DNA of 64,000 bases, from the NCBI RefSeq assembly GCF_000737315.1, contig NZ_JMCB01000019.1, positions 1-64,000 on the forward strand, written 5' to 3'. Positions 3 through 10,739 of the stretch are shown here, one piece after another (position 1 is the first letter of the stretch; each line of letters starts with the position of its first letter). The position numbers and the translations under genes were made by a program. The notes under the pieces are model-generated. The model was given only the letters and a program-made list of their open reading frames with translations. It was not told where the DNA came from and searched no databases. Source of the DNA: Hyalangium minutum (GTDB taxonomy: Bacteria; Myxococcota; Myxococcia; Myxococcales; Myxococcaceae).

Positions 3-737
3 CCCCCACCGCTCCCAGTGCAGCCTCCCGTGAACGTCCCTGCTGTATCCGCGCCTGCACCTCCACAAGCGGCAGCCCCCCTCCTCGCCGCTCCTGCCAC
101 CCCCCAGAAGGAAGGATCCACAGTGAAGAGCAAGCCGCCGGATGCACTCAAGCCAACACGCAACGTACGCGGCCAGTCGTCGGCCCCCGCCGCGACAGAC
201 CCGACATTCCCAGCGTGGTGTCGAGCCGTGACGCTGACAGCGGCGATGGCTGCTGGATGTACGGGGGCTCAACTCAGGCCGGAGCCTTTCGAGTGCCCGC
301 CGGGAGCACAGGAAGCCATGGAGAAGGAACTCGGCTGGCGCATGGGGGAGACATTCAGCCTCAAACTGGATGACAGAGGGCCGAATAAGGGCGTCCACGC
401 CTACCGCCCTGGGCCCGTTGTCGGCGTCGTAACGAACCGGGTGGTGAACAACGAGAATCAAATGCGCAAGGCGCCCCCGAGTACCCGTTTCTTCGGCAAG
501 GTGTACGTGGTGCCTGGGAAGACACCTAGCGGCAAACCCGGCGAGATCATCGCCGTGTATGACCGGGTGAAACTGCCCAATCGAGAAGAACTGCCCGTCT
601 GTTTCGTCTCGGGTGGCGACGGCACGTTTGCGCCCATTGAGGAGTTCAAAGGCGACACAGCGCTTGCCCCAAGCGTGACGACAGGAATGGTCGTGGACCG
701 CTGGCCGGAGCGTTTAGATCCGGGTTGGTACCCGTAA
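3..737 (+). CDS. 5'-truncated Pro/Ala-rich membrane or exported protein; probable C-terminal part of a myxobacterial Ser/Thr kinase-type gene
   Basis: Frame is open to the window edge. Pro-rich linker, then hydrophobic AVTLTAAMAAGC segment, then a beta-rich domain ending in a stop at 735-737. The kinase link is from recalled family resemblance only; no kinase domain is inside the window. Confidence 0.55.
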   Translation, partial: PPPLPVQPPVNVPAVSAPAPPQAAAPLLAAPATPQKEGSTVKSKPPDALKPTRNVRGQSSAPAATDPTFPAWCRAVTLTAAMAAGCTGAQLRPEPFECPPGAQEAMEKELGWRMGETFSLKLDDRGPNKGVHAYRPGPVVGVVTNRVVNNENQMRKAPPSTRFFGKVYVVPGKTPSGKPGEIIAVYDRVKLPNREELPVCFVSGGDGTFAPIEEFKGDTALAPSVTTGMVVDRWPERLDPGWYP

Positions 738-1116
738 GCGGCTGCTGCAAACCTGAGTGAGAAATCCCCACCCACCAAGCGCCCTGGTTCTGAGAGGAAC
801 GGCCGATGCACGTGCCGGAGTTGGGGCCGCAGCACTCCACGATGATGCGACAGCCACGTCCATCAACTCCATCCAACCGACAACAAATTCTGGAGTGTCG
901 AGCCCTACGTAGAGAACCAGCCCCAGGAGCGCCACCGCCACCTTCGCGGGAGCCAGGGGGTTGAACGGCTTCACGATCTCTTGTGAAAGGGGGCAGTTCG
1001 AGTACTGCTTGGTTAGGCTAGGAGTACGCTGCTGAGCCGAGACGGATGTGCTGACGTTTGAACCCCAAGAAAGGAACAAGTCCTGACGGAACAACGAACC
1101 AGCAGCCACAAGCCTT

Positions 1117-2373
1117 TCAGTCTTCAGAGCCAAGTGAGTCAATGAACTCGGCAATATTGGTCTCCAAGAAACATCTTAAGGCCTGAGCACTGGAGTACGC
1201 AGCATAAGATTGAAAATCATCGCTCTTTTTCGAGTCAGCCAAATCGCTAACTGACTTCATCGCAAACATTAGGGGGCGCGGCTCAGATACTTCTCTCGCG
1301 GCGGCGTAGAGGCCATAAATTTCCATCTCAATTCCGGCGATCTTCCGATGTTGATGCTCCTGTATTTCGAGGACAGTCGTTCCGTCTGCGAGCACCACAG
1401 AGCCAGACGCAACTGGCCCCACAATCCCCTTCAGAGAAGTTGGTGGCTTGGGACCACGCCAGCCTGAGGCAATCTGACTCCAAACGCTCGCATTATCTAT
1501 GAGTTGTTCAAATCGAGAAACAACTAAGGGTTCCACATCAAGATGATGAGGATCGCTAAGGAAGCCGATGTCTGTCTTTCCCTTGCCTTTCACTCTCTTG
1601 CCGCTTTGCCACTCCCAGACGGGAGTAGCAAGAATGACATCACCAACATTAGATCGACTGGCCAACCCTGCGCAGATGCCGGTCATTACCAACACACGAG
1701 GCCGGAAAGCTTCAATGTACTTCATCGCATGCAATGTAGTTGCAACGAGCCCCATTCTCGGCGCAGCAGAGGCCACCACCGAAAAATTCTGACCTCCCAT
1801 AGCAAAACTGCCTTCGTAGTAGAACGAAGAATGATCTAACAACCGAGCCGAATCAAACCCCCAGGGCAGATCGCGAACCGCTCTCAACTCTGGCTCTCGA
1901 AGTGCAGTCAACACGCAAACGTCTTTGTTGTAACGAACTGGAGACCGCGATTGCTTGATGCGAAAGAGATCCGAGATCAGCATCTTTAATTGATTCTGCC
2001 AACGCTCGGAGGAGTGGTCAAAGTACAGCAAATTAATTAGTCGGTTTGCCAGTCGTGCCTCATGAAGACGGGAAAGGTCTTCGCGGGCTGTGACGACAAC
2101 AATATGCATCGGCCTGTAAAAACCGTCACGCTCATGGATCTCATCGATAAGGTCCAATCCGCCAGTATCTGAAGGACGCTCTTCAGGCCGGTTAGGCAGA
2201 GCCAAATCAAGGATCATCAAGCTATACTGGTTGCGCCGCAACTTATCCCGGGCATCGTAAGAGTTCTGAGCAATCGTAATATTGTCCCGTTGCACGCCAG
2301 CCGCCACGAGAATTTTGACGAATCGCTCGAGTTTCATCTGCTCGTCGTCGACGACGAGGACGCTGAGTCCCAT
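1117..2373 (-). CDS. dtcC: Receiver + purine nucleoside phosphorylase-fold (PNP_UDP_1) effector; Detocs DtcC-like ATP nucleosidase
   Basis: N-terminal REC (VLVVDDE, LMILD56LALP). C-terminal PNP/MTAN motifs MTGICAG, GDVILA, GPVASGS, GIEME, MKSVSDLAD. Last gene of the operon. Confidence 0.88.
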   Translation of the reverse strand: MGLSVLVVDDEQMKLERFVKILVAAGVQRDNITIAQNSYDARDKLRRNQYSLMILDLALPNRPEERPSDTGGLDLIDEIHERDGFYRPMHIVVVTAREDLSRLHEARLANRLINLLYFDHSSERWQNQLKMLISDLFRIKQSRSPVRYNKDVCVLTALREPELRAVRDLPWGFDSARLLDHSSFYYEGSFAMGGQNFSVVASAAPRMGLVATTLHAMKYIEAFRPRVLVMTGICAGLASRSNVGDVILATPVWEWQSGKRVKGKGKTDIGFLSDPHHLDVEPLVVSRFEQLIDNASVWSQIASGWRGPKPPTSLKGIVGPVASGSVVLADGTTVLEIQEHQHRKIAGIEMEIYGLYAAAREVSEPRPLMFAMKSVSDLADSKKSDDFQSYAAYSSAQALRCFLETNIAEFIDSLGSED

Positions 2374-2376
2374 TAG

Positions 2377-2829
2377 TCACCCACCAACTGAGATCATTGC
2401 ATCTATGAGCATGTGCTTCCATTGCTCCGATGCGGCATTGTAGTAGATTATGCCGCGAAAATTTCCTGGATAAGATTCTTTTAGTGTTTCTCCAAGAGTC
2501 TCAATCTCAATTTCGTCATCGCCGGTGTCAAATCTCTCGAATTGAGTGACAACAATCACTGGCGTCGCGAGTTCTAAAAAATCCATATATCCTAGCAATT
2601 CTCTGCCGCCAAAAGCCTGCGGTCGACCTCCTGGTTCCTCCCCTCCGATGTCATATGAAGGTAGCGACATGTCGAGCAGCACAATGTCAAACGAACGAGC
2701 GCGTATTTCAATCTTCCCGCTATGAACAGAACGTGCGCTCAAGATCGTACACAATGGAAATGCCTCTTTAACAAAAGAGGAGAGTTGTTTAAATTTGAAC
2801 TGATCATCTTCGATGATGAGAACGTTCAT
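2377..2829 (-). CDS. dtcB: Stand-alone response regulator receiver; Detocs DtcB-like buffer protein
   Basis: MNVLIIEDD and IVLLD53MSLP, no output domain. ATGA overlap with the upstream kinase and 3-nt gap to dtcC. Confidence 0.88.
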   Translation of the reverse strand: MNVLIIEDDQFKFKQLSSFVKEAFPLCTILSARSVHSGKIEIRARSFDIVLLDMSLPSYDIGGEEPGGRPQAFGGRELLGYMDFLELATPVIVVTQFERFDTGDDEIEIETLGETLKESYPGNFRGIIYYNAASEQWKHMLIDAMISVGG

Positions 2830-5800
2830 TGTTCCATCTCCACCCCCAGGATCAATTCTCCCCGCCCCTGCATCTCGATGTGGAAGAGCGACATGCCAAC
2901 ATGCAGGAAGAAGCAGTCTTTGTTCTTGAATCCAAAATTCAATGCATGAGCCTTGTACTGGCTCACAATGCGCTTAAGCTTTACCAAGCCGGACTTTCCT
3001 TCCACTGACACACGAGTGCGGTAACCGTCCCCACCGATAAGCACGCGGATGTCGTCCAGGGCTTTTTCTGCGCTGGGAGAATAGGCGTCGCCTGCAATCT
3101 CGCTCTCGATATCGATGGAAAGGAGATCCGATGCGCGATCATCCTTGACACGAATCTGTACTGCAGGCTGTCCCAACACCTTGGAATGTCTGTAGATATT
3201 ATCTAATGCAATGAAAATAATATCAGTCACTTCGTTGAGGACTGTGCCTCCCATTCGGCGATCTGCTTCAAGTATTCTCTCAATTTTCGGAGAAAAGCCT
3301 CGCAGCGTCCGAAGCGCGGATTCGACGGCGATGTCGATTATTTGCTCGATTGTGAAACTAGCGGTCACATCAGAAGACTCGTCAAGGTGCAACCAGTCAG
3401 CAACACGTAACATTGCATGCTGGGCTCCCGTGTTGGCGGTAACCAAACAATTCTTGAGTTCAGTATATTGCCATTCATCCAGCGCTTCACCGAGTCGGCT
3501 ATATACTTCCTGGAAAATACGCTCAGCTTCAGTTCGGAAGATTCCATCTATTGCCACCCTGGCTGATTCCAAGTCAGTACTCAGTTGTTGCCTGAACATG
3601 GTAAAGCACAGCGAAAGGAAGTCTTCAAAGGTTGAAGTTTCCTGGGCGTCGTTCCGGATCGCGTGAACGAGGAAGGGATTAAATGAGCGGCCAAAAACAC
3701 CCTGCGGATGTTGCTCGCTTCGAATGTGTAGAACAGGCTTGATTTGTTCCTCTATCAGCAGGTCATATTTCTCTGAAAGCCAAGCGAGTGCCTTGTCGAC
3801 TGTGTTCTCCTGCTCAGGCGTGGCGACATGAAGACGTGATATCCAAAAATCATTGCGTTTGTAAGTCCCTGTGACTTCATCGCGCGTGGTGATTAACTTT
3901 CGATCATCCAGTGGGCCTCGCAATGTTCCGGACAGGGTCCCATGTCGAATCCGCATGCTCAAAAAGCAATCAAGGCCATGCTCAGAATTGTTAAGAAATT
4001 CTTTCCACAAAGCCTCGAGCATTTCTATCAAGAGTGCATCATTGTCTTCATGAGGCAACTCAAGATACTGCGCAGGCATTGGTTTGCGCGTTGTCAGCGC
4101 ATCGCGAACAGCCAACTCAAAGTCTCTTCTAGAACTCTGCGGACCCGTTTGTAGGAATTCTTTGTAACGATCAAATATTTCCCGGAGTTCCCGCTCAGCC
4201 CAGCGCGAGATGGCGTCGTCGTCAACAAAAACGCGGCTTCGATCAACGATCTGGACGCCTTCCTCAATTTTTAGCTTAGTAGCTAGGCTTTTGATTTCTC
4301 CGCGATAGATCTCGGCATTGTCTGGATCCAGGCTAACGAGGAGGGAGCACACGTTGATACGCTCTTCGTCGATAGCCCGTGATGTTGGCAACCCACGACA
4401 TGCCTCAAGTACAGGTTGCACACAGATTTTCTTGAGAAAGTACAACACCTGCTCGCGATCATATTCGTTGATCCTTCGAGCTATGTCTGATGGGTGTTCT
4501 AATCCATTTTTCGCAAGAAATTCATCACAAGACCATCGCAGATTGTTCTTAGAATCTTGAGTCTCGTGAAGTCTATTTTGTAGATCAAAGAGGATTGGAG
4601 TTGAAATGAGCTTTAGGAAGGGGCGCATCGACTTCAGCTTTCTGCCATCCATGATGCGCCTGATCGGAAACACAAGTCGCAAGGAGTCACGCAAAGCACA
4701 CCAATGAGCGATTTGCTCAATGGCAGCCTCAAGTTTCCCCATCCCCAACAGGCATTCGACGCTGTAGCGCGCACCTGCGAAACGTACAATGAGATTGCTG
4801 TCCAGGAGCAGTTCTTGCGCAATAGCGTATGCCAGCCCAAAATTCTTCTGTTCCAAATGGGCTTGAAGCGAGCCCTCGGCGAGTTGTTCCCGCGAAAGCG
4901 CATTCGCAGTTTGTTGATCAACATGAAGCCCAGCGGCAACGCCAGCGCTTAGTACTGCGAGAGACCTTCCATACTTTGCTTCACACAATGCAAAGTACGC
5001 GGCCCGCCTTTCAGTCTTCAGGGCAATGATGTCAGAAGGATCATGGATTGAAGAACAGGCGAACTGCGTCAAGCGCAAGGCATGGACTGATTGAGCTGCG
5101 GGTGTAGACGTGCTCAGTAGCGCCGATGCCATCACCGCAGGCATTATCGGCAATGCGCTATAGTTCTTAGATAGCTTGGCAAGCTCAAGGATTGATCGCG
5201 CAAGATTATCAGTTCGGCCGAAAACAGAAGCCAAGAGACTAACCATCTTGTCTTGCAGTGTCTCTGACCGCTCAGTCTCACGCTGTAAGTACGCCAAGCT
5301 TCTGGCTTTGATGATCATGCAGGAGAGATCGAGAGGGTCTTGGCTCAGAGTGACGTCAGATGCGCGTATCGCATCGTCGTAGCGCCCCGACCAAAATGCA
5401 TCTGATGCGGCTCCATCAATGGGCCGAAGGGAACTAAGGTCAGTTACGCCGTTGAACCAATAGAGCAGCTTGGTTATGCGATTGTCGCCGATAGGGCTTA
5501 GAAGGGACAGCGCTTGAGATATTTCACCATGCAGACTTTCTTCGTCGGGAAGACTAAGCATGTGACGAGAAATGAGCAGAAATGTCTCGTACAGATCTAC
5601 GAGAGAAGCTGTTGCGTCATGCCTTAGAATCGCTGCCAGTTGAATCGAATCCTGTGGCAAGTCCCCTGTGATTCGATAGGATAGATACGCACCTAAGTCG
5701 TCGTGCAGCTCCCAGGCAGTGAGCTTCCGATTGAAGTTGGTTGCGAAGCGAGGCAAGGTGATGCTGTCTTCGTTCCTCCTGCTCGTATAGTGGGCTACAA

Positions 5801-6338
5801 AAGCAGCAAATGACTTCTTTGCGCGTTGCTTTATATTTTTGGTGAATTCTTTCTGCTTCTCCAGTCCAGATTTGGCTTGCAGTGTTGCAATGCGATTCTC
5901 AATCGACCAAAGCGAATAGCCGAATTTGTTGTCCACCTCATCCAGTGCTCCAAGCGCCGCATCATACTGGCTAGTCAATAGGTTGCGCGCGAACTTCTGG
6001 GACAAGTTAACATAGGAGCCCAAAGTCTGAGTGCGTTGACTAAGAACTAAAGCAGACCATAGGATCTCTTTGACGGCTGGTACCTCATCCTGCGGGCGCC
6101 TGCGGTGCAGATTCCGGAGAGAACGCACAGGCGTAATCCCAAGTGCGCCACTTCGTGCTTTGGGGATCCGCGTCATCCAGGTCATGAACCCGGGCAACTG
6201 CTTTTCCGGAAAGCTCAGGCGGATTGCGTTAATTGTATCATGTAGTTCATCGCCTTTTTGATGAGCTCGGCCGCGTACGAGATTCTTCGCGAGATGAATC
6301 TCTATCTGCTGGTCGTCGAGATTATTGTTCCGTGACAT
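2826..6338 (-). CDS. dtcA: Large cytoplasmic TPR-like sensor with C-terminal histidine kinase module; Detocs DtcA-like
   Basis: 1170 aa, helical-repeat character, no obvious TM segment. Putative H-box MRIRH799GT, N-box IIFIALDNIYRHS, degenerate G-box EGKSGLVKL. Confidence 0.85.
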   Translation of the reverse strand: MSRNNNLDDQQIEIHLAKNLVRGRAHQKGDELHDTINAIRLSFPEKQLPGFMTWMTRIPKARSGALGITPVRSLRNLHRRRPQDEVPAVKEILWSALVLSQRTQTLGSYVNLSQKFARNLLTSQYDAALGALDEVDNKFGYSLWSIENRIATLQAKSGLEKQKEFTKNIKQRAKKSFAAFVAHYTSRRNEDSITLPRFATNFNRKLTAWELHDDLGAYLSYRITGDLPQDSIQLAAILRHDATASLVDLYETFLLISRHMLSLPDEESLHGEISQALSLLSPIGDNRITKLLYWFNGVTDLSSLRPIDGAASDAFWSGRYDDAIRASDVTLSQDPLDLSCMIIKARSLAYLQRETERSETLQDKMVSLLASVFGRTDNLARSILELAKLSKNYSALPIMPAVMASALLSTSTPAAQSVHALRLTQFACSSIHDPSDIIALKTERRAAYFALCEAKYGRSLAVLSAGVAAGLHVDQQTANALSREQLAEGSLQAHLEQKNFGLAYAIAQELLLDSNLIVRFAGARYSVECLLGMGKLEAAIEQIAHWCALRDSLRLVFPIRRIMDGRKLKSMRPFLKLISTPILFDLQNRLHETQDSKNNLRWSCDEFLAKNGLEHPSDIARRINEYDREQVLYFLKKICVQPVLEACRGLPTSRAIDEERINVCSLLVSLDPDNAEIYRGEIKSLATKLKIEEGVQIVDRSRVFVDDDAISRWAERELREIFDRYKEFLQTGPQSSRRDFELAVRDALTTRKPMPAQYLELPHEDNDALLIEMLEALWKEFLNNSEHGLDCFLSMRIRHGTLSGTLRGPLDDRKLITTRDEVTGTYKRNDFWISRLHVATPEQENTVDKALAWLSEKYDLLIEEQIKPVLHIRSEQHPQGVFGRSFNPFLVHAIRNDAQETSTFEDFLSLCFTMFRQQLSTDLESARVAIDGIFRTEAERIFQEVYSRLGEALDEWQYTELKNCLVTANTGAQHAMLRVADWLHLDESSDVTASFTIEQIIDIAVESALRTLRGFSPKIERILEADRRMGGTVLNEVTDIIFIALDNIYRHSKVLGQPAVQIRVKDDRASDLLSIDIESEIAGDAYSPSAEKALDDIRVLIGGDGYRTRVSVEGKSGLVKLKRIVSQYKAHALNFGFKNKDCFFLHVGMSLFHIEMQGRGELILGVEMEQ

Positions 6339-6345
6339 TGCCGCG

Positions 6346-6383
6346 TTGATTTGATCAGGTGAATTGATTTGATCAGGTGAATT
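6346..6383. repeat. Perfect 18-bp tandem duplication (TTGATTTGATCAGGTGAA x2 + TT) directly upstream of dtcA
   Basis: Copies read directly at 6346-6363 and 6364-6381. Each contains the palindrome TGATCA. Confidence 0.95.
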
Positions 6384-6410
6384 AGAGTCGAGCTTTGAAC
6401 TTCTAGTGCG

Positions 6411-6439
6411 GTTCTAGGGTTTTGTAGCTGCATCGTCAA
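6411..6439 (-). promoter_or_regulatory. Putative sigma70 promoter of the dtcABC operon
   Basis: Minus strand TTGACG-N17-TAGAAC, about 70 nt upstream of the dtcA ATG. The -10 lacks the final T. Confidence 0.5.
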
Positions 6440-6474
6440 TGAAGGTGTGGAGTTCGCGCGTCCCTGAAGGCTTA

Positions 6475-7380
6475 GAGCCTATCTCAGTAGGGAAGAAAAC
6501 GCCCTACCTGATGGGTTAGAAGGTGAAGGAGGAAGTGTGGATTGGGAGTAGCGAAGAGGGATGACGGTTGAAGGATGCCGGAGGAACTGTGGGCGAAGAT
6601 AGAGCCCCTGCTGCCGCCGAGGCCCGAACACCCGCTGGGGTGCCATAACCCGAGAGTGCCGGACAGGGCGGCCATGGAAGCCATCCTGCTGGTGCTGCGC
6701 ACGGGGATGCAGTGGCAGGCGCTGAAAGCCACCGGCCTGTGCCACCCGTCCTCCGCCTACCGGCGGTTCCGCGAGTGGCTTACGGCCGGAGTCTTTCACG
6801 AGTTCTGGCGCCTGGGACTGCTGGCGTACGACGCCCTGGTAGGCATCGACTGGCAGTGGATGAGCGTGGACGGGGCGATGACCAAGGCGCCGCTGGGAGG
6901 AGAGAAGACTGGCCCCAACCCGACCGACCGCGCCAAGAAGGGAACCAAGAGGAGCTTGCTCACAGACAGGCGTGGCGTACCGCTGGGGGTGGTGGCCGCA
7001 GGAGCCAACGTCAACGACCATAAACTGCTGCCCTCTACGTTCGACTCGGTGCCGGTGAAACGTCCCGAGCCTGAACCATGGCCTGCCCAGCACCTGTGCC
7101 TGGATGCGGCCTACGCCTGTACCGAAGTGCGTCGGTGGGGAGACACGTTCCGCCTCCGGCGGCACATCCGCCCGCGTCGTCCCCCCGTCACGCCCCCGAA
7201 GAAGAGCCGCCGGCCGCCGCAAGAAAGCGCGCCGCTGGGTGGTGGAACGCTCCCACTCGTGGATGAACCGCTTCCGAAGAATCCTCATCCGCTGGGAGAA
7301 GCGCGAAGACACCTACCTGGCCATGCTCCACTTGGCCCTGGGCATCATCACTTGGTTCCACTTCCTACCGAAATAGGCAC
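6475..7380 (+). mobile_element. IS5-family insertion sequence, 906 bp (IS427/IS1031-like)
   Basis: Left IR GAGCCTATCTCAGTAGG (6475-6491) and right IR (7364-7380) match at 14/17. TTA duplicated at 6472-6474 and 7381-7383. Confidence 0.9.
6542..7376 (+). pseudogene. IS5-family DDE transposase, probably inactivated
   Basis: ELWAKIEPLLP...ILLVLRTGMQW, SVDGAMTK, LCLDAAY, RWVVERSHSWMNRFRRI motifs. In-frame TGA at 6569-6571 where GWRM would be expected, and a +1 frame change around 7200-7225. Confidence 0.75.
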
Positions 7381-7501
7381 TTAGCGCGCTTCGCTCCGTC
7401 CTCAACGCTTACGTCTCCCCTCGAGATCGCGGTCCTCGCCAAGCACGGCACGGGTCCGTCCTCAATCTCCTCCAGCACGTCGCTGACCGGACGGATACGT
7501 A

Positions 7502-8700: not shown

Positions 8701-9879
8701 TCAGGCGCTCCGGCCTGGCCTCACCAGCGTTCCGCCCACCGCCACGATGCCCAGAAACACCACCAGCAGGCCCAGCGCCAACGGCAGCCCGAGCTGATCC
8801 GCCAGGAAGCCCACCACCGGCGGACCCACGAGGAAACCGCAATACCCGGCCGTGGATACTGAAGCGATGGAGACACCGGGCGAGCTGCCCGGGGTACGGC
8901 TCGCGGCACTGAACAGCACGGGGATGAGGTTGGACAGGCCCAGCCCCACACAGGTGAAGCCCACCAGCGCCGCCACCGGGTGGTGCAGCAACAAAGCGCC
9001 CCCAAGCCCAGCCGCCGCCAACACTCCTCCCACGCGCACCAGCCGCTCTGGCCCCACCACCGCCACGAGCCGATCCCCCGTCAGCCGCCCCAGGGACATG
9101 GCCAGCGAGAACACGGCATAGCCCGCCCCGGCGATGCCCGCCTCGGCCTTCAGCGACTGGCGAAGGTACACCGCGCTCCAGTCCGCCATGGCGCCCTCGA
9201 CGACGAGCACGAAGAAAGCGAGACCGCCCAACAGCAGCAACGGTCCCTTCGGCAGGGCAAAGGTCTGTGCAGCCCCTCCCACGTCCGCAGAGCCCGGCAG
9301 CAGCGAACGAGAGACGACGACTACGGTGATCAACCCCAGTCCCCCCGCGAGCACCATGTGCTGCGAGGGCGTCAGCCCGTAGGACAGCGCGAGGATGGAG
9401 CCGCCCGAGCCCACCAACCCGCCCAGGCTGAACAAGCCATGGAACGAGGACATGACGGAGCGGCGCATTCGCCGCTCGACCGCCACGGCGTGGGCATTCA
9501 TCGCCACGCCCATGGCCCCAGTGGTCGCGCCGAACGCCACCAGCATGGCCGCGAACCACGGCAGGCTGGGCGCGTGTACGGGCAGCACCACGATTGGACA
9601 GAGCAGCAGCGAAGTCACGAGCGTCACGGCCCGGCTCCCCCACCGCGCCACCTGCGCCCCGGCGATGGGCATGGAGACCAGCGAGCCCGCGGCCACCCCG
9701 AGCAGCGCCAGACCGAGCTGGCCCGCGCTCAGGCCCAGCCGGGCTTGAACGGTGGGGATGTGCGGCACCCAGCTCGCGAACGAGAAACCGTTGACGAAGA
9801 ACACGGCGGAGACCGCGACGCGCGCGGCCGTGGCGGAAGGCTCGGCGCCGCCCTCCCAGGTCAGGCTCGAGGAGCTCAT
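8701..9879 (-). CDS. MFS transporter (YbjJ-like)
   Basis: About 12 hydrophobic helices, GRLTGDRL loop motif. ATGA overlap with the DeoR gene. Confidence 0.9.
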   Translation of the reverse strand: MSSSSLTWEGGAEPSATAARVAVSAVFFVNGFSFASWVPHIPTVQARLGLSAGQLGLALLGVAAGSLVSMPIAGAQVARWGSRAVTLVTSLLLCPIVVLPVHAPSLPWFAAMLVAFGATTGAMGVAMNAHAVAVERRMRRSVMSSFHGLFSLGGLVGSGGSILALSYGLTPSQHMVLAGGLGLITVVVVSRSLLPGSADVGGAAQTFALPKGPLLLLGGLAFFVLVVEGAMADWSAVYLRQSLKAEAGIAGAGYAVFSLAMSLGRLTGDRLVAVVGPERLVRVGGVLAAAGLGGALLLHHPVAALVGFTCVGLGLSNLIPVLFSAASRTPGSSPGVSIASVSTAGYCGFLVGPPVVGFLADQLGLPLALGLLVVFLGIVAVGGTLVRPGRSA

Positions 9880-10667
9880 GCGGTAAGGATCCGGAGGTTG
9901 AGTTTGCGGAAGGGGCTCAGCGTGGCCTCGGGAGCGCTGGCCTCGGTGACGAGCGTGGCCAGCCGATTGGCCGGAGCCACGGCGAAGGGCGACAGCGTGT
10001 CGAGCTTGTCGGCGGTGAGCACGGCCACGGTCTCGGCCGCCTGGTGGACCATGACCCGCTTGGTGGCGGCCTCCTCGGCGAGCGTGGCGGTGACGCCTCC
10101 CTCGATGTGCAGGCTGCAGATGCCCAGCAGGCACAGATCCGCGTGAATCTGCCGCAGGGCTTCCACCGTCTCGGCGCCCACGACCGTCAGCGCTTCCGGG
10201 TGTAGGCGGCCACCCACGAGCCGGACCTCGATCCCTGGATGCTCGGCCAAGGCGAGCGCCACGGGAGGACTCACGGTGATGACCGTGGCGCGCAGGTCCT
10301 TGGGCAGGCTGCGAGCGACCTCCAGCGTGGTGGTGCCACCATCGATGAAGATCACCTGCCCTGACTGGACCAGCCCCGCGGCCACGTGGGCCAAAGCCTG
10401 CTTGGCCGGCTGCTGAAGCTCCGCTCGGGCCTGATGGCTGAGCTGCACGTGGGTACGCGGCAGCGCACCCCCGTGAACCCGTCGGAGCAGCCCTGCTTCA
10501 TCCAATTCCCGCAGATCCCGGCGGACCGTGTCCTCCGAAACCCGCAACAACCGGCACAGGTCGGAGGCATACACGCGCCCCTCGGTGGAGAGGTGCTCCA
10601 GAATGGCCTTCCGCCGCTCCTCGGGGAGCAGGGGGTCGAGAGCGGTATTGGGAGGTTGCATGGCCAT
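9876..10667 (-). CDS. DeoR/GlpR-family transcriptional regulator
   Basis: ERRKAILEHL...VSEDTVRRDLRELD HTH and IFIDGGTT sensor domain. Confidence 0.93.
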   Translation of the reverse strand: MAMQPPNTALDPLLPEERRKAILEHLSTEGRVYASDLCRLLRVSEDTVRRDLRELDEAGLLRRVHGGALPRTHVQLSHQARAELQQPAKQALAHVAAGLVQSGQVIFIDGGTTTLEVARSLPKDLRATVITVSPPVALALAEHPGIEVRLVGGRLHPEALTVVGAETVEALRQIHADLCLLGICSLHIEGGVTATLAEEAATKRVMVHQAAETVAVLTADKLDTLSPFAVAPANRLATLVTEASAPEATLSPFRKLNLRILTA

Positions 10668-10684
10668 GCAGGTCCTTGCTGTTT

Positions 10685-10710
10685 CCAGCAATATCCCGCA
10701 CAAACCCGCA
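10685..10710 (-). promoter_or_regulatory. Three direct repeats with 10-bp period (TGCGGG, TGCGGG, TGCTGG) upstream of deoR; candidate auto-operator
   Basis: Plus-strand CCAGCA 10685, CCCGCA 10695, CCCGCA 10705. Confidence 0.5.
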
Positions 10711-10739
10711 ACATTCAAGAGGGGCCCTGCACCCGCGCC

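Follow-up and report, generated by a model that had tools for sequence, protein, structure and literature searches.

Contig JMCB01000019.1 of the myxobacterium Hyalangium minutum DSM 14724 opens with a short stretch of DNA that is much poorer in G+C than the rest and carries three adjoining genes, which raises the question of whether these genes form a complete phage defence system and how such a system came into this genome. We analyzed the first 64,000 nucleotides of the contig (hereafter the window); window position 1 is the contig end. A preliminary description of this DNA, made from the sequence alone, had interpreted the genes as a horizontally acquired Detocs operon in a myxobacterial host, encoding a TPR kinase (DtcA), a buffer receiver (DtcB), and a receiver-nucleosidase fusion (DtcC). 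Our analysis leads to the same assignment: the locus is very probably a complete PNP-type Detocs two-component defence system on about 5.5 kb of acquired AT-rich DNA. The assignment stands on gene structure, family membership, protein folds, the conserved catalytic and phospho-acceptor residues, and the foreign composition and mobile surroundings of the operon, all of which we established here. The host is as had been proposed: the DtcC sequence was found on one public contig, JMCB01000019.1 (assembly GCA_000737315.1), and JMCB00000000 is H. minutum DSM 14724T (PMC5441343).

Gene organization and base composition

The Detocs genes and the low-G+C DNA that holds them are as follows.

2826-6338, minus strand: dtcA, sensor histidine kinase of 1170 amino acids (open reading frame (ORF), PADLOC profile, and AlphaFold2 model)
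2377-2829, minus strand: dtcB, stand-alone receiver of 150 amino acids, proposed to be a phosphate sink ("buffer") (ORF and PADLOC profile)
1117-2373, minus strand: dtcC, receiver joined to a PNP/MTAN-type nucleosidase, 418 amino acids, predicted ATP/dATP nucleosidase effector (ORF, profile, and AlphaFold2 model)
about 1000-6500, no strand: low-G+C island (about 0.47-0.53) containing only the three Detocs genes (composition profile and computed G+C)

Each of the three genes has an ATG start and a TGA stop. The dtcA stop codon overlaps the dtcB start codon by four nucleotides (ATGA), and dtcB and dtcC are separated by three nucleotides (TGA CTA ATG), so that the coordinates, overlap, and gap of the coupled genes are exactly those of the preliminary description. 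The reading frame runs through the operon for about 5.2 kb with zero frameshifts or stops. Under the MacSyFinder rule for Detocs, dtcA, dtcB, and dtcC must be grouped, with room for no more than one foreign gene among them (Rousset et al. 2023, bioRxiv 10.1101/2023.01.24.525353, which subsequently appeared in Cell); in H. minutum, the three genes are contiguous, with zero intervening genes.

The computed G+C content was 0.498 at 1117-6338 versus 0.676 at 6501-64000. The contrast with the flanks that had been noticed by eye is therefore real, whereas the accompanying estimate of 50-55% for the operon was slightly high. The G+C content at third codon positions (GC3) was 0.44-0.54 in dtcA, dtcB, and dtcC versus about 0.8-0.94 in likely native ORFs, the latter range being selected rather than measured, as these ORFs were chosen by GC3 > 0.78.

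Assignment to the Detocs family

A PADLOC profile search revealed matches for all three proteins over nearly their full length, to PDC-M60A for DtcA (E 9e-204, 677.6 bits, residues 33-1156), PDC-M60B for DtcB (E 1.3e-45, 153.1 bits), and PDC-M60C for DtcC (E 5.4e-125, 415.4 bits), and no difference from these models was found. The validated Detocs protein sequences given in Table S1 of Rousset et al. (bioRxiv 10.1101/2023.01.24.525353) were scanned against the same library. Their best families were PDC-M60B for Vibrio alginolyticus DtcB (1e-17), PDC-M60C for V. alginolyticus DtcC (1.4e-64), and PDC-M60B for Enterobacter cloacae DtcB (5.8e-28); no PADLOC model matched the N-terminal 399 amino acids of V. 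alginolyticus DtcA, which was the only part of that protein scanned. Because the validated Detocs proteins match PDC-M60 best, PDC-M60 and Detocs are the same family, and judging from these matches the family seems to go under the name PDC-M60 in PADLOC, an equivalence unstated in the literature that we found. The much higher PDC-M60 scores of the H. minutum proteins place them nearer to the family center than the Vibrio ones.

The H. minutum locus shares with the Detocs system of V. alginolyticus UCD-32C the gene order, a DtcA composed of TPR and histidine kinase parts with an RIRHGT box, a receiver-only DtcB with Asp53, and a receiver-PNP DtcC in which the phospho-acceptor and catalytic aspartates are aligned. 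Residue by residue, H645 of V. alginolyticus DtcA corresponds to H799 in H. minutum, D53 of DtcB to D53, and D58 and D353 of DtcC to D56 and D377. The V. alginolyticus mutants H645A, D58A, and D353A lost defence and DtcB D53A was toxic; PNP is the DtcC effector in about 80% of Detocs systems (bioRxiv 10.1101/2023.01.24.525353). The two systems differ in that sequence identity is low (BLASTP gave 27% for DtcC over its full length, E 3e-40, and 25% for DtcB, E 6e-9), in the host, which is a 68% G+C myxobacterium, and in DtcA, which has about 977 amino acids in V. alginolyticus (an estimate from the cloned span) and is about 190 amino acids longer in H. minutum. The PADLOC profiles matched by all three proteins, the BLASTP similarity to V. 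alginolyticus, the folds described below, and the gene order bear out the Detocs identity proposed at the outset, and the phospho-sites H799, D53 of DtcB, and D56 of DtcC named there are all present.

The DtcA kinase

DtcA begins with a TPR-like alpha-solenoid (residues 1 to about 700), followed by a helical region that carries the phospho-acceptor H799 and, at the C-terminus, by an ATP-binding domain (about 997-1150). The box around H799 is RIRHGT, as it is around H645 of V. alginolyticus DtcA (RIRHGTFEG in the mutagenesis primer of Table S7). In an alignment of 53 sequences, H799, N1047 of the N box (FDNxxxHS), and E1113, G1117, and K1120 of the G2 box (EGGTGLxKL) are invariant. The AlphaFold2 model of DtcA (mean predicted local distance difference test score, pLDDT, 88.5; predicted template modelling score, pTM, 0.73) is helical throughout up to about residue 985, with an alpha/beta domain at 997-1150. 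A Foldseek search of the PDB using this model revealed similarities with long TPR solenoids (IFT-A subunits, Ctr9, Ski3, and Naa15) and, with probability 1.0, with the DHp-CA cores or CA domains of HK853, RetS, CheA P4, CckA, AgrC, and YycG.

Sequence-based searches recovered much less. DtcA had no match in local Pfam and NCBIfam scans, HisKA and HATPase_c included, and a sequence search against the PDB gave nothing meaningful. As Pfam finds neither HisKA nor HATPase_c, the kinase core of DtcA is divergent; the public record of the protein carries the newer Pfam family PF27260 (Y4jQ). A word-indexed homologue search returned DtcA itself and one weak match only, and an exhaustive search returned 2491 representative clusters (50% clustering, E <= 1e-3). 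Most of these representatives have 1100-1190 amino acids, so the length of 1170 amino acids is typical of the family. The predicted structure thus supports the "TPR kinase" label of the preliminary description, with both TPR solenoids and histidine kinase cores among the Foldseek matches, although the core seems too divergent for the classical Pfam models. The most variable part of DtcA is solenoid residues 301-600, with a mean identity of 16-22% to 52 homologues versus 30-39% around the histidine box. Such variability is as expected for a ligand- or phage-sensing surface, for which this segment is a candidate.

The DtcB receiver

The Pfam Response_reg match of DtcB is weak (E 7e-6) and falls under the gathering score. 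D53 is located in LLDMSLP and is the residue that aligns with V. alginolyticus D53. No DtcB relative was found in the phage collection at E <= 1e-3; a phage-borne decoy receiver related to this DtcB is therefore absent from this data set.

The DtcC nucleosidase

DtcC contains the Pfam domains Response_reg and PNP_UDP_1. Its receiver carries D56 in ILDLALP, and its nucleosidase domain (about 150-413) carries E162, M350-E351, and D377. Every invariant column of a 61-sequence alignment is kept in the protein, namely D10, D56, E162, G208, G232-I233, G258-K259, M350-E351, K373, D377, and K383; the full PNP motif set that had been read from the sequence is thus confirmed. In the AlphaFold2 model (pLDDT 94.5), a CheY-like receiver is followed by a long linker helix and then by a domain superposable on MTAN, and a Foldseek search using it revealed MTANs at E of about 3e-17 with TM scores to the target of up to 0.84. 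In a phmmer comparison with solved MTANs, E349-M350-E351 and S376-D377 of DtcC fall on the MTAN EME and SD motifs, the sites of the catalytic Glu174 and Asp197. The PDB titles of the MTAN mutants Glu12Gln and Asp197Asn mark Glu12 and Asp197 as mechanistically of interest, and we infer that E162 of DtcC is the counterpart of Glu12.

An identity as an MtnN equivalog was considered and ruled out. DtcC scored below the curated NCBIfam cut-offs (49.7 bits versus 169 for NF004079 and 27.7 versus 73.8 for TIGR01704), and it has 418 amino acids with an N-terminal receiver, compared with the single-domain enzyme of about 230 amino acids. The match of DtcC to V. alginolyticus DtcC (E 3e-40) is far better than that to the best MTAN (E about 1e-5). 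The PNP/MTAN fold is common to DtcC, MtnN/MTAN, and Cap17, the ATP nucleosidase of type III CBASS, and the conserved EME and SD motifs of MTAN are matched by the Glu and Asp of DtcC. The housekeeping MTAN, however, is a constitutive single-domain enzyme acting on methylthioadenosine (MTA) and S-adenosylhomocysteine (SAH), whereas DtcC is a receiver fusion; Cap17 is switched on by a cyclic-nucleotide sensor domain, in whose place DtcC carries its receiver. Rousset et al. place Cap17 and DtcC in one immune clade (bioRxiv 10.1101/2023.01.24.525353).

Earlier cataloguing of the H. minutum system

In Table S4 of Rousset et al., a PNP gene of H. minutum DSM 14724, IMG gene 2611348516, is placed in the Cap17 immune clade with the context "Detocs" (bioRxiv 10.1101/2023.01.24.525353). 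It is the single "Detocs" entry for this strain, and we therefore equate it with the dtcC described here, a link made by strain identity and sole entry and not by direct mapping of gene identifiers. Membership of DtcC in the Cap17 clade follows from this placement, together with the E values of 3e-40 and about 1e-5 given above. Because the PNP gene of the strain is already listed as "Detocs", the copy has been catalogued, and the hope expressed in the preliminary description that it might be undescribed is not borne out. The phylum is covered as well, since Table S5 includes Anaeromyxobacter dehalogenans 2CP-C (bioRxiv 10.1101/2023.01.24.525353). Within the library searched, no paper treats Detocs together with myxobacteria. 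The H. minutum operon is an ordinary member of a described defence family.

Table S4 also contains further Cap17-clade PNP genes of H. minutum, and for at least three the context is given as "NLR-like". Several ATP-nucleosidase immune effectors are thus predicted in this host.

Relatives and horizontal origin

Species-representative genomes were scanned with the DtcC alignment, which gave 80 related loci; the copies of H. minutum, Corallococcus, and Myxococcus xanthus are not among them. All three genes, dtcABC, are present in 76 of the 80 loci, and 72 pass a strict collinearity test. Across many phyla, the operon has a lower G+C content than its flanks in 70 of 72 loci; the difference averages -0.078 and reaches -0.235 at the extreme. 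The deficit of the H. minutum operon (-0.18) is large, and its sign is the usual one for Detocs loci. We therefore rejected low G+C alone as proof of recent transfer, since the deficit is a trait of the whole Detocs family.

The closest copy is that of Corallococcus sp. AB018 (RAWR01000039.1), with identities of 67% for DtcC, 64% for DtcB, and 51% for DtcA, and the copy of M. xanthus (CP017172.1) has identities of 57%, 58%, and 43%, respectively. Both resemble the H. minutum locus in having the same operon at about 51-53% G+C within flanks of 67-70%, but they lie at unrelated sites with other flanking genes, beside IS66-, IS21-, and IS3-type genes. The three myxobacterial copies are about 15-18 G+C points under their hosts, at different sites and next to different insertion sequence (IS) elements. 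No non-coding DNA is common to H. minutum and the related loci, and hence no common element boundary can be defined.

The next DtcC relatives after the myxobacterial ones are metagenomic, with 53-55% identity. One of them (L086) is on a circular, plasmid-like contig of 34.6 kb with genes for a MobA/MobL relaxase, ArdC, ParB, an integrase, and a PIN protein, whose G+C content (0.55) equals that of the operon. In a second (L087), IS21 and Tn3 genes adjoin the operon, and in a third (L085), a DDE transposase splits dtcA and the operon is broken. These plasmid- and transposon-borne copies are at least as close to the H. minutum copy as that of M. xanthus. A protein search of PLSDB revealed DtcC relatives on 69 plasmids, 37 of them conjugative, and a DNA-level search of PLSDB with the operon gave zero matches.

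The differing sites, the relatives on plasmids and transposons, and the position of the M. xanthus copy point to separate horizontal acquisitions from a mobile pool. A horizontal origin of the H. minutum operon, as claimed in the preliminary description, is supported by composition, the adjacent IS, and the mobile relatives, but because the low G+C content is family-wide, it argues less strongly for a recent transfer than had been implied. A more specific scenario is that these three copies (pairwise DtcC identities of 53-67%), which are part of a Detocs sub-clade, have been re-imported repeatedly into myxobacteria from a plasmid and transposon pool of about 45-55% G+C, with residues 301-600 of DtcA tuned to myxophage cues. 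We consider this scenario speculative and rather unlikely.

Flanking DNA and neighboring genes

The features on either side of the operon are as follows.

6339-6480, minus strand: AT-rich dtcA leader, presumed promoter/operator region, holding an 18-bp tandem duplication
6575-7384, plus strand: IS5-family transposase ORF of 269 amino acids (DUF4096, E 3.5e-21; DDE_Tnp_1, E 2.9e-6, partial)
318-737, plus strand: protein of 139 amino acids with no Pfam or PADLOC match

The duplication in the leader is exact and occupies 6346-6381, with two copies of TTGATTTGATCAGGTGAA (two copies of TTCACCTGATCAAATCAA on the gene strand), ending 8 nucleotides before the dtcA ATG. The repeat includes the palindrome TGATCA and was not found upstream of dtcA in Corallococcus, M. 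xanthus, or the metagenomic relatives. An operator function, a scar left by duplication, and mere chance are all conceivable, and the repeat could also represent a host-specific regulatory adaptation.

The transposase ORF lies about 240 bp upstream of dtcA in DNA of host-like G+C content (0.66 from about position 6500). The public record annotates only a 45-amino-acid gene at 6575-7384. Neither terminal inverted repeats nor another copy of the IS were found in the window, and a composite transposon is therefore not demonstrable; the IS5-family element may be degenerate. On the other side, positions 738-1116 are non-coding with intermediate G+C, and the left edge of the island cannot be defined because the contig ends about 1.1 kb beyond dtcC. 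A 19-nucleotide sequence at 1112-1130, GCCTTTCAGTCTTCAGAGC, extends across the dtcC stop and is found again, with a single mismatch, at 5006-5024 inside dtcA; the rough chance expectation for such a recurrence is near 0.01 per 9-kb region.

The PADLOC scan covered ten neighboring ORFs, of which one is located past dtcC and nine are upstream of the transposase, as far as about 17.4 kb; the transposase ORF was not among them. None gave a family-level match to any PADLOC defence system. A DeoR-type regulator (9876-10739) matched CRISPR-associated regulator models over short stretches of their helix-turn-helix parts (best E 1.2e-6), and marginal PDC-M28B matches were seen for two other proteins. 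A multi-system defence island on the visible side is unsupported, given the lack of family-level matches among these ten ORFs. The window contains no tRNA gene, hence no tRNA integration site is in view, and no integrase was called within 10 kb on the visible side.

Proposed mechanism

The steps proposed here are carried over by homology from the V. alginolyticus system (bioRxiv 10.1101/2023.01.24.525353). The TPR-like solenoid of DtcA would sense a cue of phage infection, whereupon DtcA would phosphorylate itself on H799 by means of its C-terminal ATP-binding domain and pass the phosphoryl group to D56 in the DtcC receiver. In phosphorylated DtcC, the MTAN-like nucleosidase would cut the N-glycosidic bond of ATP and dATP, giving adenine together with (deoxy)ribose-5'-triphosphate; as energy and dATP run out, the infection would be aborted. 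DtcB would compete through D53 for phosphoryl groups and soak up leaky kinase activity, so that uninfected cells would be spared poisoning and autoimmunity. Considering how receiver domains generally behave and that PNP/MTAN enzymes have oligomeric active sites, we further suggest that phosphorylation of the receiver may drive a dimerization that completes the active sites. The trigger, the phosphotransfer, ATP as the substrate, and protection against myxophages are thus predictions for H. minutum, and homology likewise suggests that its Detocs system acts in defence and cleaves ATP.

Weighing of alternative explanations

Several observations weigh against the Detocs reading. The solved structures nearest to DtcC are MTA/SAH nucleosidases and not an ATP nucleosidase, its ATP specificity is extrapolated over 27% identity to the sole biochemically tested DtcC, and no match to the sigma-70 consensus was found directly upstream of dtcA. 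The structural neighbors would suit a housekeeping or regulatory two-component system in which phosphorylation controls an MTA/SAH or other purine nucleosidase serving methionine or purine salvage or the metabolism of quorum signals. The NCBIfam matches are likewise to MTA/SAH nucleosidases, the catalytic residues are those of MTAN, and the host is rich in signalling systems, as is general for myxobacteria. We nevertheless consider a salvage role very unlikely: the NCBIfam MTAN score is 49.7 bits against a cut-off of 169, V. alginolyticus DtcC is matched at E 3e-40 against about 1e-5 for MTAN, and a DtcB-type buffer has no obvious role beside a salvage enzyme. The foreign composition, the IS neighbor, and the plasmid- and transposon-borne relatives also argue against it, as does the fact that Rousset et al. 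assign the gene to the Cap17 immune clade.

The same mobile relatives, common on plasmids and transposons, would be expected if the operon were an addiction or stabilization module of a mobile carrier, with DtcC as the toxin, DtcB as its restraint, and phage defence secondary or absent in this host. The isolated PNP domain of V. alginolyticus is indeed highly toxic, and DtcB D53A shows PNP-dependent toxicity, but defence has been directly demonstrated for two Detocs systems (bioRxiv 10.1101/2023.01.24.525353). Moreover, there is no hint that DtcB is less stable than DtcC, and no plasmid genes are in view around the H. minutum copy, which is chromosomal, so we give this explanation little credence. 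The operon could also be a silent or inactive relic, whose genes are unexpressed in a 68% G+C host or whose kinase no longer recognizes Hyalangium phages. Its GC3 of 0.44-0.54 versus about 0.8-0.94 in ORFs selected for high GC3, the missing promoter consensus, and the IS about 240 bp upstream of dtcA would fit such a state, and decay does occur, as seen in the metagenomic locus with the transposase-disrupted dtcA. The open frame of about 5.2 kb is intact, however, the translationally coupled overlap is retained, and all the invariant residues of both large families, DtcA and DtcC, are kept, which makes a relic highly improbable. The preferred reading therefore remains a complete PNP-type Detocs system.

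Implications

A published defence family can be recognized from raw sequence, and the H. minutum copy is intact; to this extent, the locus adds little to what is known. As a small point of general relevance to Detocs, the G+C deficit is family-wide (70 of 72 loci) and not peculiar to the H. minutum copy. Myxobacteria, with their very large native two-component repertoires, provide a natural setting for asking how an imported immune phosphorelay avoids cross-talk. If the myxobacterial copies have in fact been re-imported repeatedly and their solenoids tuned to myxophage cues, they would offer a tractable system for finding the trigger of DtcA in a host that has hundreds of native two-component proteins, amid possible cross-talk.

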